Part shown: positions 33,458 to 37,611 of the stretch, one piece after another
Numbering within the stretch: the first letter of the stretch is position 1
How the letters are laid out: the number at the start of each line of letters is the position of its first letter
DNA from: Guillardia theta CCMP2712
Lineage: Eukaryota; Protista; Cryptophyta
Length of the DNA stretch: 64,000 nucleotides
Direction of reading: 5' to 3'
NCBI RefSeq assembly: GCF_000315625.1
Contig: NW_005434610.1
Coordinates: 235,698-299,697 of the forward strand
Notes under the pieces: generated by a model
Databases searched by the model: none
Told to the model about the DNA's origin: nothing
What the model saw: the letters and a program-made list of their open reading frames with translations, nothing else
Made by a program: the position numbers and the translations under genes

Positions 33458-34687
33458 ATGGCGCTCGTCTGGGCCGTCATGGCGGCAGCCCTGGCGCTGG
33501 CTGGCAATGCAGGAGGAGCAGACGCCTCAGGTGGGACCTTCCTGATCCCCTCTGCTGAGAGGAAGCTTCTGGCTGCTCAGGATGGGATCAGCAACTGTAG
33601 TGCGGCCTGCGCTCGATGCAACATGTTCGGCAGTACCCTGGACGTCCCATGTAGCAGCAAGATTTGCAACAGCAAGGGACGATGCGATGGGCAAGGACGA
33701 TGTGTCTGCTTTGAAGGATGGGCAGGGCTGACATGCAACGTGTCTACGACAACTTCTCCTGAAGTTCATCAACAAACAAGCACAACTATAATCATCACAG
33801 ACACCAATGCTACTATGCTTCCAGGGACCACAGTGCTTCCAGAGACAACAAGCGCACAAAACTTGACCAACATCACAGGTGAAAACAGTCTTCAAGAATC
33901 AACCAGGACATACGACAACATTACGAGTGTTGTATCATCCATGGAATCAACCAATCCAGCCAGTACCCCTGAAACGACTCCAGTTGGTAACAGCGCCATC
34001 GAGGCCACCGTCAACTTTCTCGTCACTTTCTCGATGACCCGCGCTGAGTTTGAAAACATCCGAGTGAAGTACCTTGCAAGCTTCGCGCGTGCAGCAAAGG
34101 TTTCTCTTAACAGGGTGAGGATCGTAGAGGTGAGGGAAATCTCCCTCAGACGATCTGCAATACACCGACGACTGCTAGCCAGCGGGGTAGAGGTTGTGAC
34201 CGAGGTGAAGCTCGACGGTACGCAGTCAGCAGACAGCTACAGCATCAGTTCTGATGGTCTCAATGCTGAGCTTGTGAAGGACGGGCTTCCTGCCAGTCAA
34301 GGGGTCAAGAAAGTCACGTCCCCCTCCACCACCGTGGTGAAGTCACTTGGCGGCATCACCCGTTCGGAGATCATTCTTGCGAGCTGCCTCGGGGGCGTCA
34401 CTTTGTTGGGTCTGGTCGTCGGATGTTTTGTTTGGGTGTGGATAAATGGGGGGAGGAAGAAGAAGCTGGAGGAGACGAAAATGGTTGAAGGGAACAGTGC
34501 TTGCTCGGCCTCGATCGGTTTCGAGTCATGGGCAGTACCCCATTGCGTGAAGAAGCAAAGTCCAGATGGAAGCTACGAGATTCAAGAGAATGAGGAAGAG
34601 AACACCGAGAAGCTCAACCAGGAGGCCGCTGAGCCTGACTCAGAAGCTTTAACCAAGTACTGTTTGAGCGAGGTGCTGAATGATTAA
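33458..34687 (+). CDS. Type I membrane protein: signal peptide, EGF-like domain, Thr/Ser mucin-like stalk, juxtamembrane domain with RRLL, TM helix
   Basis: 409-aa intronless ORF with CNSKGRCDGQGRCVCFEGWAGLTC, NxT sequons and TM IILASCLGGVTLLGLVVGCFVWVWI followed by RKKK. Confidence 0.85.
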   Translation: MALVWAVMAAALALAGNAGGADASGGTFLIPSAERKLLAAQDGISNCSAACARCNMFGSTLDVPCSSKICNSKGRCDGQGRCVCFEGWAGLTCNVSTTTSPEVHQQTSTTIIITDTNATMLPGTTVLPETTSAQNLTNITGENSLQESTRTYDNITSVVSSMESTNPASTPETTPVGNSAIEATVNFLVTFSMTRAEFENIRVKYLASFARAAKVSLNRVRIVEVREISLRRSAIHRRLLASGVEVVTEVKLDGTQSADSYSISSDGLNAELVKDGLPASQGVKKVTSPSTTVVKSLGGITRSEIILASCLGGVTLLGLVVGCFVWVWINGGRKKKLEETKMVEGNSACSASIGFESWAVPHCVKKQSPDGSYEIQENEEENTEKLNQEAAEPDSEALTKYCLSEVLND

Positions 34688-34842: not shown

Positions 34843-36150
34843 TTACACCTGAGCATCACTCTGTAGGTTTGCATGACACGACGCAATCCACTCCAACTTG
34901 TTGCAACGCTTCTCAACCTGCAAATCATCATGTTGTCACGTGACAGAATCTTCACCGTCATCCGCCGACACTCTTCTTCCTCTTTCACCGTCTCTCACCT
35001 CCAAGAGATGCGGGCAGGTCGTGGCAAGGTCGACGTCATACCTGAGGAAGTGACTGTAACATTGACCCGCAAACACCTCATCGCACATTCCAGACCTTCG
35101 GGCATTGTAGAGCTGAGGTATCAGACAGGCATCAGCCATGGTTGGTTCGCGGGTTCCAGCAAGGTACACGCTGTCGTTTCCTCGATCCTCCTTTAGCTCC
35201 TCCAGGATCTGCAGGGCAAGGACCTGAACGAAAGGATACACGTGAGGACAGAAGTTGAAGCTCATGGTCCGAAAACCTCCACAGCTTCCAAGCCCTTTGA
35301 GATAGCCTTGTGTGCCCAATCCTGTTGTCTCAAGTTCACGGACCAAATCTTGATCATCCTCGACTTCATCAACACACAGTCACATACCTTCGAATCCATC
35401 TGCCCGTTGCTGCAAAGATCATCAGAGAGGAGGATGGCCTGAGATTCAGTCTGACTACCTTGAAATAGCTTTGAGGACGCTGAGATTCTGCAAGGGTTGT
35501 ATTCCACTGTTGATTATCTCCGATATCTGCAGCAGCTGTAAACTTGGAAATCCTCCACTTCGCATTCAGAGAGTCCCCACAAGACGCTGGTAAGATCACT
35601 GTACCTGTCTCACTCGCATCCTTTCAATAGGATCTTTTGGCAACATGGAGCAACCTAAATCAACATCAACACATGAAAAAGAGTTACATATCCGGCACCA
35701 GAATTGGGAAAAGTCTCTTCCAGAAATTCGATGATTGCTAAGCTCTGACTCAGCAGCCTCTGTCATGACGTCACTTGGTCTACCACATCCAATACAGAGA
35801 ATTCCTTTGTCTTTGCTTCTTCATCATACACCTCCAAAGTCGGAACCTGAGCCCACCATCATCGGCAGGGAAAGACTGAACCAAATTTCCACCTGTCTCA
35901 TTCGGTTGCGATTTTCATGCTCACTGTCATGCTGGTCCCCTTTTGAGATGTCAATGGGAACGTACTGTTTTATCACAGTTGTCAGTTTGGACATTTTAAG
36001 GTAGCTTTAACAATTTTCCGAACCTCATACTTAATGCCTTTTGCGGCCAACGCGATTCTCACTCGCCAAGTGCACGATGACCGCCAGTAGCCTAACAGAA
36101 ATCTTCAATCGATTAGTGGGTATAATAAAATCTGATGACCGTAAAGCTTC
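34843..36150 (-). CDS. GSTZ1: Maleylacetoacetate isomerase (GST zeta) domain, the C-terminal part of the FAH fusion
   Basis: KLYG/YWRSSCTWRVRIALAAKGIKYE (zeta-class SSC motif), WAHKAISKGLEAVE, PTMADACLIPQLYNARR/YDVDL. Stop at 34843-34845. Confidence 0.85.
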
Positions 36151-37611
36151 CAAGTGTGAAATCGTCTTGCCCCCATAGACGCAACTTGTGACACTCCGTG
36201 AGCTGCAAGTACCTCTTGTTCCAGGTGGACGTGCGCTGGATTACTTTCAATAATGGAGCCAGCAGGGAAGATCTTGCCTGCAGCAATTGAAACTCGAGTA
36301 AGTTTTGAAAAATGAGACAACAATTTTACCATTGCACTCTCCAAAGCCAAGTGACAGTATTCTCTCGTTCCCATTGCTGTCTTGGACCTTATTTTGACAT
36401 TTTCCTCTCATAATCACTTTGTCAAAATCCTTGAGAAATTTTCTGTTTTCTCCAGAGCTACCAAGCGGAACATCACGAGTACCTCTCCAGCTCATCTCCA
36501 ACAGACTCCCAAGAGAGTCTTGTTCGCCCCCACTGATTGTGCCGGTACCGAGAAGATCTCCTGGCCTCATCCGACATCCTGTCACTGTGTGATGCACCAG
36601 TTGTTGCTTGATGTTCCAGTAAAGGTTGCGCATGTTGGTGCGGCAGACCTGCTCTGCTTGAGGCATATCCTGACCCTGGATGCTGACCGTGAGGTCAATG
36701 TCGAAGGAGGAGTAATTGGGATCTTTCAAGTAGTCGAGCGGCTCGGGGTCCTGTTGAACCCTGGAGATGGTCTCGCAGGTGAATGGTTTCAAGGCCTCAT
36801 ATGGAACGATCCAAGGAGATATGGAGGTGGCAAAGTTCTTGGATCCAAAGGGCCCAAGTGGGACATACTCCCACGACTGGATGTCCCTGGCAGACCAGTC
36901 GTTCATGAGGACAAGGCCGAAGATTCGATCTTCAACGTTGTCCATGGTTATGGTCTCACCCAACCTCAGGGGCTCCCCCCCTACAAAGAACGCAATCTCC
37001 ATTTCAAAGTCCAGGTTCTTGCATGGACCGTACTCGCTTCCTTTCTTTGGGTCTCCTTTATCCTTCTGCAACTGACCTCGTGGGCGAACGATCTCGGTCC
37101 CGCTGACGAATACGGTAGATGCGCGGCCATGGTATCCAACAGGAAGGTGTAGCCAGTTGGGCTGCAAGGCATTCGCTGGATCACGAAACATGCACCCGCA
37201 ATTGAACGCATGGTCTCTGGAAGAGTAAAAGTCTGTGTAGTCTGGTATGACAGCCGGAAGATGCATCTTCACTGTATCTAACTTGACGAATGCCTTGGAT
37301 GCCATTACAGGATCGTCTCTTAATTCCCTGCTTCCTCCTTCTCTGAGAAGGTCCATGAGTCTTTCTCTTGTAGCTTTCCAAACAGATGAAGGACATGCCA
37401 TGAATTCATTCAAGGCTGGCTTTGAGAAGCACGATGGGTCCAAGCCTCCAATGCCCCGGAGCAGGCAAGTGACAACTGACAAGTCCAGGACTAAATTTCC
37501 TATGGCAACCCCGCACCTTGGTGGCCTTGAGCTCGTTGAGAAGACTCCATATGGCAGATTGTCAAGTGTGAAGTCAGAATTCTCTGGTATCTCAACCCAG
37601 GAGCGCGTCAT
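36151..37611 (-). CDS. FAH: Fumarylacetoacetate hydrolase domain, fused in frame to MAAI
   Basis: SDFTLDNLPYGVFST, DYTDFYSSRDHAFNCG, HLPVGYHGRAST, LDFEME, NDWSARDIQSWEYVPLGPFGSKNF, GDLLGTGTISG, GFGECN/GKIFPA. Confidence 0.95.

Follow-up and report, generated by a model that had tools for sequence, protein, structure and literature searches.

A Guillardia theta gene predicted to join fumarylacetoacetase and maleylacetoacetate isomerase in one polypeptide

The window analysed here is a stretch of 64,000 nucleotides (nt) from the cryptophyte Guillardia theta CCMP2712 (contig NW_005434610.1, positions 235,698 to 299,697 of the forward strand; coordinates below count from its first letter). A gene on its minus strand joins a fumarylacetoacetase (FAH) domain to a zeta-class glutathione S-transferase (GST) domain of the maleylacetoacetate isomerase (MAAI) type. 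Transcript, exon structure and homologues together make it highly probable that this is one nuclear gene of 13 exons, encoding a FAH-MAAI fusion of 697 amino acids (aa) that is very probably bifunctional for the last two steps of tyrosine catabolism. In a natural RNA, FAH, linker and MAAI are read in one frame.

Gene structure and transcript

Exon 1 of the gene, used as a query, returned a protein of 557 aa (P0002), 100% identical to it and containing FAA_hydrolase and GST_N domains. The source of this protein is L001, a public JGI transcript contig of 2400 nt, which aligns to minus-strand positions 37617-34662 of the window with no mismatch. The preliminary description of this DNA had proposed, from the letters alone, that removal of a 52-nt intron (36329-36278) restores the conserved FAH ending, that a stop-free linker of about 35 aa follows as far as KLYG, and that removal of a 48-nt intron (36139-36092) then brings in the zeta-GST signature. 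Both introns are removed in L001 exactly as predicted, together with eight more of 44-81 nt, and the linker proved to be 37 residues long (from FPA to KLYG) and to lie within one exon. A transcript crossing 36400-36000 had been named as one way to check the proposal; L001 spans this region, lacks both introns and reads through in one frame. From the ATG, this frame runs for 642 codons (L001:7-1935) and carries FAH, linker and the N-terminal half of MAAI, with Pfam domains FAA_hydrolase_N, FAA_hydrolase and GST_N (50.3 bits for the last). Against the fumarylacetoacetase model TIGR01266 it scores 538.1 bits (cut-off 375.3), over model positions 1-419 of 420.

Exon arithmetic for the whole gene, minus strand 37611-34843, gives 13 exons with 2094 coding bases, that is 697 codons plus the TAA. 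The start ATG lies at 37611-37609 and the stop at 34845-34843. All 12 introns are short (44-81 nt each); 11 of them are GT..AG and intron 5 is GA..AG. The parts of the gene, all on the minus strand, are as follows.

36330-37611 (minus strand): exon 1, nearly the entire FAH domain, 427 codons and 1 base; PF09298 and PF01557; L001 positions 7-1288
36278-36329 (minus strand): intron 1, 52 nt, GT..AG; absent from L001
36140-36277 (minus strand): exon 2, the bridging exon, 138 nt, with the last FAH residues (KIFPA), the linker and the first MAAI beta-strand (KLY); a single block in L001
36092-36139 (minus strand): intron 2, 48 nt, GT..AG, within the MAAI N-terminal strand; absent from L001
36024-36091 (minus strand): exon 3, zeta-GST signature YWRSSCTWRVRIALAAKGIKYE; aligns to Ser14-Ser15-Cys16 of human GSTZ1 (1fw1)
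35459-35964 (minus strand): exons 4-8 (35964-35893, 35846-35805, 35759-35699, 35654-35605, 35526-35459); spliced in L001
35760-35804 (minus strand): intron 5, 45 nt, non-canonical GA..AG; removed in L001
35096-35409 (minus strand): exons 9-11 (35409-35388, 35321-35277, 35223-35096); one unspliced block in L001
35322-35387 (minus strand): intron 9, 66 nt, in frame and stop-free; retained in L001
35224-35276 (minus strand): intron 10, 53 nt, containing a TGA; retained in L001
34843-35041 (minus strand): exons 12-13 (35041-34999, 34917-34843), the MAAI C-terminal helices and the TAA; spliced in L001
34662-34842 (minus strand): 3' untranslated region up to the end of L001; overlaps the end of the convergent open reading frame (ORF) 33458-34687

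Exon 1 scores 94.8 bits against PF09298 (FAA_hydrolase_N; profile positions 2-105 of 105) and 119.9 bits against PF01557 (FAA_hydrolase). Intron 1 splits the codon that follows ...GFGECN, and its removal produces GKIFPA, the conserved C-terminal end of FAH, reading ...GFGECNGKIFPA. Exon 2 then continues for 45 stop-free codons, from GSIIES through MGARRFHTW, which contains the one Met of the linker, to KLY, and splicing out intron 2 joins KLY to YWRSSCTWRVRIAL. The end of FAH and the beginning of MAAI are thus encoded by the same exon, and the spliced frame has no stop codon between them. The chance of a stop-free frame of 45 codons is ~0.1, so that the openness of exon 2 alone could be fortuitous; the fusion goes beyond chance because L001 is spliced at introns 1 and 2 and because many orthologous fused proteins exist. 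The remainder of GST_N and the beginning of the helical domain, with the VP, QS and QPLQN motifs of the glutathione site, are encoded by exons 4-8. No placement of a GT..AG intron reproduces L001 at intron 5, and the spliced length there equals that of the homologues.

Some further observations concern the vicinity of these features. Retention of intron 9 would add 22 residues to the GST helical domain; a charged insertion of ~20 residues (ERREREREKE...) is found at the corresponding place in P0003, a cryptophyte-like homologue. The convergent ORF (33458-34687, plus strand) encodes 409 aa with a signal-like N-terminus, a Ser/Thr-rich stretch, a likely membrane span and one EGF-like domain (EGF_Teneurin, 24.6 bits), and the FAH-MAAI transcript overlaps, at its 3' end, the final 26 bases of this ORF. 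A scan of 36000-36400 for sigma-70 promoters and terminators was set aside, as bacterial consensus patterns are meaningless for a cryptophyte nuclear gene.

Domain identity, structure and pathway

The FAH part matches mouse and human FAH in the PDB with E values of ~1e-138. In the alignment to mouse FAH (1hyo, whose chain index equals the residue number plus 2), identity was found at D126, E199, E201 and D233, at the pair H133/E364, and at Y128, R237, Q240 and K253 (mouse numbering). These are, respectively, the metal ligands, the catalytic pair and the oxyanion/substrate residues, as reported by Timm 1999 and Bateman 2001. The alignment of the G. theta protein to mouse FAH begins at residue 4 of the latter, which leaves no room for an N-terminal targeting extension, and the fusion protein is therefore probably cytosolic.

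The N-terminal half of the second domain matches mouse and human GSTZ1 (2cz2, 1fw1) with E values of ~1e-30. The segment RSSCTWRVRIAL, which lies opposite residues 13-24 of 1fw1 in the alignment, carries the zeta signature SSCxWRVRIAL, corresponding to Ser14-Ser15-Cys16 of human GSTZ1. The motifs of the glutathione site are kept as well: QVPTL (VP, with the cis-Pro), SQSLAII (QS) and GIQPLQNL (QPLQN). The C-terminal piece matches solved MAAIs (4igj, E 4.7e-7; 1fw1, E 3.2e-6), and its NARR aligns to N172-R175 of human GSTZ1, so that an equivalent of Arg175 is present; this residue falls at the junction of exons 11 and 12. The alignment of 55 fused homologues shows no variation at these FAH positions and none, or almost none, at the GSTZ positions, which places both domains under selection while fused.

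The predicted product of 697 aa (~78 kDa) would comprise a complete N-terminal FAH of 430 residues, a tether of ~37 residues and a complete C-terminal zeta-class GST/MAAI of ~225 residues. The C-terminal domain would carry out the first of the two reactions, the glutathione-aided isomerisation of maleylacetoacetate, the product of homogentisate dioxygenase (HGD), to fumarylacetoacetate. The N-terminal domain, by means of its metal site and His/Glu dyad, would then cleave fumarylacetoacetate to fumarate and acetoacetate. The two steps correspond to EC 5.2.1.2 for the isomerase and EC 3.7.1.2 for the hydrolase. If so, both activities would reside on one polypeptide in vivo, the fusion would fix the ratio of the two enzymes at 1:1, and it might keep the reactive intermediate near the hydrolase, possibly with channelling. 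A higher-order assembly is also conceivable, as both domains normally dimerise.

A structural model was calculated with AlphaFold2 for P0004, a full-length natural homologue, with the alignment of 55 sequences as input. The model has a mean predicted local distance difference test score (pLDDT) of 90.6, with 80-92 in the linker, and a predicted template modelling score (pTM) of 0.79. FAH makes up 64% of the chain, and so high a pTM suggests that the two domains adopt a compact, defined arrangement rather than that of beads on a string. When the model was searched with Foldseek, the two parts were matched separately, FAH to 1qco (template modelling score, TM, 0.96) and the second domain to MAAI structures (TM ~0.9); no PDB chain covering both domains was found in this search. 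The P0004 model is 45-46% identical to the Anaeromyxobacter MAAI (4igj/4kae) and 36-38% to mammalian GSTZ1.

Searched in six frames, the whole G. theta assembly (87.1 Mb, 669 contigs) contains a single FAH locus, that of the present gene. No second zeta-GST was detectable in the assembly, the only exons of zeta character being those of the FAH-MAAI gene. Three extra matches to a degenerate DNA pattern for RSSCxWRVR were discarded: they were no more numerous than those of a reversed-pattern control, contained stops and had no GST context. The best other match to TIGR01262 in the genome, on C31, is a delta/theta/phi-like GST and was likewise rejected as a zeta enzyme; its gene is intronless and encodes 217 aa (L006:1426-2079; G000:C31, ~210319-210972). 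Multi-exon genes were found for HGD on contig 42 (G000:C42:96805-98546, minus strand) and for 4-hydroxyphenylpyruvate dioxygenase (HPPD) on contig 219 (G000:C219:67535-69308, plus strand), both on contigs other than that of the fusion. Since HGD, HPPD and FAH-MAAI are all present, the homogentisate route is, as judged from the predicted genes, complete in the G. theta genome, with its final two steps assigned to one gene.

Fused homologues and alternative readings

A survey of domain architecture had been put forward as a second check of the proposal. Among the 120 best relatives of the FAH part, 69 carry GST domains after their FAH domains, with lengths of 587-721 aa (P0002, at 557 aa, is counted in). 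Fused proteins occur in diatoms (Seminavis robusta, P0092; Fistulifera solaris, P0103), in other ochrophytes (the dictyochophyte Pseudopedinella, P0008; the chrysophyte Paraphysomonas, P0010), in dinoflagellates (Effrenium voratum, P0094; Crypthecodinium cohnii, P0034; Gymnodinium smaydae, P0091) and in the prasinophyte green alga Cymbomonas tetramitiformis (P0062). These algal proteins of 640-720 aa, entered in databases as 'fumarylacetoacetase', share with G. theta the domain order, the short linker and the junction motif (see below); they are 53-64% identical to it in the FAH part and 48-53% in the N-terminal half of MAAI. They are uncharacterised, and their names ignore the second domain. 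The architecture is therefore not new: it is common in microalgae and present in public databases, where it has gone unrecognised and uncharacterised. Within the same set of 120, the fusion is seen in cryptophytes, ochrophytes, dinoflagellates and one prasinophyte and not in oomycetes, whose FAH is unfused, as it is in Triparma. A number of unfused proteins (P0013, P0018, P0031, P0041, P0047, P0056 and P0112, from Triparma, Attheya, Leptocylindrus and others) end, where the fused proteins continue into MAAI, in a short conserved tail (...AGS/TKL..G.G.W...). These tailed FAHs may represent a paralogue or a remnant of fission.

Two same-strand neighbour genes might have been joined artificially, by chimeric transcript assembly or by read-through. 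Short-read assemblies can merge overlapping neighbour transcripts, and a suspicion of this kind has been voiced for Phaeodactylum tricornutum, where Phatr3_EG02215, annotated both as a fumarylacetoacetase and as a GSTZ1-like/MAAI protein and up-regulated with other genes of tyrosine catabolism, was said to be something that 'may actually be a compound of two genes' (Pan et al. 2020, PMC7780933). In G. theta, however, the spliced frame contains no FAH stop, and the end of FAH shares a single 138-nt exon with the first MAAI strand. Moreover, dozens of independent assemblies contain the fusion with a conserved junction, and so do continuous genomic ORFs. Of the fused genes, three occur on genomic contigs (one of 373 kb) as ORFs of 671-675 aa with no interruption, and the neighbours of such ORFs are eukaryotic: condensin-2 subunit H2, GPI2 and an SF3b-type splicing factor. 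An artefact of transcript assembly is therefore excluded for the fusion family, and we give almost no credence to one in the G. theta gene. Phatr3_EG02215 resembles the G. theta gene in that both activities occur in one gene model of an alga with a complex plastid; the G. theta gene differs in belonging to a cryptophyte, in its 12 short introns and in that a true single frame is established by spliced transcript and exons. On these sequence comparisons we argue that the fused reading, and not that of two merged genes, is the true one for such genes.

The junction itself is conserved. In 55 fused proteins it follows the motif R-[YF]-x-[ND]-F-K-L-[YH] ahead of YWRSS, with R in 22/55, Y or F in 46/55, any residue, N or D in 41/55, F in 36/55, K, L in 55/55, and Y or H; the G. 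theta sequence R-F-H-T-W-K-L-Y fits this motif. Stand-alone MAAIs open with MKLYGYWRSS, and the position of their start Met is taken by F in the fusions and by W in G. theta. The spacing between GFG and the core motif ranges from 28 to 50 residues in the 55 compared (median 34), the 50 residues of G. theta being the longest.

Several observations weigh against a single fused product. L001, the sole transcript contig found, retains introns 9 and 10 in the block 35409-35094, and no fully spliced mRNA was seen. The L001 ORF scores only 146.1 bits against TIGR01262 (maiA), over model positions 1-122 and under the cut-off of 171, and the match to GST_C_2 in a 95-aa product read from L001:1932-2219 is weak (24.3 bits, cut-off 24.9). 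The nearest FAH relative, that of Hanusia phi (P0001, 91% identity), has a protein model with FAH alone, which stops at the exon-1 boundary. In a relative from MMETSP (65% identical), isoforms keep the linker intron and yield an FAH-only protein (P0038) and MAAI-only ORFs (P0150, P0164) that begin inside this intron; a further isoform of this relative is fused (P0151, 609 aa). The intron-retaining isoforms may simply be unprocessed RNAs; it is also possible that intron retention at the FAH-MAAI junction is regulated.

Taken at face value, some of these data would fit a single transcription unit from which two working enzymes are made, an FAH closing in a short unrelated tail, from RNAs that retain intron 1, and a free MAAI initiated at the linker Met (MGARRFHTWKLYG), the case that the preliminary description had set against its own proposal. 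When intron 1 is retained, the frame stops at 36247, giving an ORF of 454 aa (36247-37611); the Hanusia model ends at the matching exon boundary, the isoforms of the MMETSP relative contain separate FAH and MAAI ORFs, and intron retention does occur in the G. theta gene itself, as seen in L001. Intron 1, however, is removed in the only transcript seen. Its retention would delete the KIFPA end of the protein, and this FAH end (GK[IV]LPA) is kept by most homologues, whether fused or unfused. The linker Met, for its part, is poorly conserved: among the 26 residues that precede the strand, a Met occurs in only 16/55 fused homologues, at varying positions. Finally, the uninterrupted fused ORFs of other genomes offer no such option. 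Production of two separate enzymes appears unlikely, and a single fused product is preferred.

The retained introns of L001 also bear on the identity of the second domain. It is because of introns 9 and 10 that the L001 ORF stops after the N-terminal half of GST, the remainder being called as the separate 95-aa product. Both junctions are in phase 0, and once the two introns are removed, mouse GSTZ1 and P0004 align across them free of gaps; for these reasons a functional message must, to judge from the alignment, lack introns 9 and 10. The maiA score below the cut-off is likewise explained by the truncation of the ORF by the two retained introns, which leaves half of the model covered. It could be argued from this score, and from the catalytic promiscuity of zeta GSTs (Polekhina 2001, as cited in PMC7780933), that the fusion is real but that its GST domain is a general detoxifying or dehalogenating enzyme and not an MAAI. 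Yet P0004, an orthologue of full length, reaches 203.8 bits with the same model (cut-off 171), the best PDB matches of the GST domain are all MAAIs, and both SSCxWRVRIAL and the equivalent of Arg175 are present. Furthermore, with HGD and FAH in the genome, the pathway also requires an isomerase, and no other zeta-GST is detectable there. We consider a function other than that of MAAI very improbable. The in-frame FAH-MAAI fusion put forward from the letters alone is thus borne out by transcript, exon structure and orthologues, with both catalytic sets intact.

Origin and meaning of the fusion

The evolutionary history of the fusion was approached through trees of either domain. In the FAH tree, which is unrooted and imperfectly labelled, fused and unfused rows (oomycetes, Triparma and some diatom transcripts) are interleaved. 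The labels were assigned with a regular expression that was too strict: some long fused proteins were marked as unfused, and several 'unfused' rows are fused transcripts truncated at their 3' ends. Because of this labelling, the 17 changes counted on the tree are an overestimate, and the Pfam-based figure of 69/120 is used instead. The MAAI tree was built with the N-terminal half of the G. theta domain only and with a stand-alone set chosen for its similarity to that domain. When run quickly and without constraint, it placed the G. theta sequence among stand-alone MAAIs of mostly myxobacterial type. When the 53 fused rows were held together as one clade, the log-likelihood was 35.4 higher than that of the free tree (approximately unbiased test, p-AU 0.92), in a tree with no rooted outgroup. 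The MAAI domains of the fused proteins are thus compatible with a single clade. An independent fusion or a domain replacement in G. theta was considered and set aside, as the constrained tree is the likelier one and the junction motif is shared. The constrained tree, the shared motif and the shared domain order together point tentatively to one fusion event, after which losses or transfers would have occurred. The suggestion that the fusion could serve as a phylogenetic marker holds in part: the MAAI domains are compatible with one clade, but the distribution is patchy, with fused and unfused proteins interleaved in the FAH tree. The nearest named stand-alone relatives of the fused MAAI domains (P0153-P0272; PDB 4igj/4kae) are myxobacterial.

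In animals, plants and fungi, the separate enzymes FAH and GSTZ1/MAAI (mouse FAH, 1hyo/1qco; human GSTZ1, 1fw1; Arabidopsis GSTZ, 1e6b) share folds and catalytic residues with the fusion but come from two genes and form two homodimeric proteins. In the bacterial hmgABC operon and in the fahA-maiA pair of Aspergillus nidulans, the two final steps are encoded by physically linked genes. In hmgABC of Pseudomonas, the FAH gene precedes that of the isomerase, the same order as in the fusion, but the linkage is one of transcription or neighbourhood and not of a single polypeptide. The stand-alone bacterial MAAIs nearest to the G. theta domain have a start codon of their own, opening with MKLYGYWRSS. 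No description of a bifunctional FAH-MAAI enzyme was found in the literature searched, save for the remark on Phaeodactylum (PMC7780933).

It seems conceivable, as a tentative and rather doubtful proposal, that a one-time FAH-MAAI fusion gave rise to an undescribed, structurally fixed bifunctional enzyme in which fumarylacetoacetate is handed directly from the isomerase to the hydrolase site, and that the patchiness of its occurrence records gene flow among plastid-bearing lineages.

For G. theta, the analysis corrects the gene model to 13 exons and locates all of the homogentisate pathway in its genome. For microalgae more widely, it concerns an architecture that is common in ecologically dominant groups, yet is annotated only as 'fumarylacetoacetase' and has on one occasion been put down to a possible error of annotation. 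Because the fused protein bears only this name, metabolic reconstructions of such algae can wrongly score MAAI as missing. The intermediate fumarylacetoacetate is toxic and underlies human tyrosinaemia type I. A naturally occurring enzyme that would both produce and destroy this compound on one chain offers a model for asking whether fusion shields cells from a reactive metabolite.

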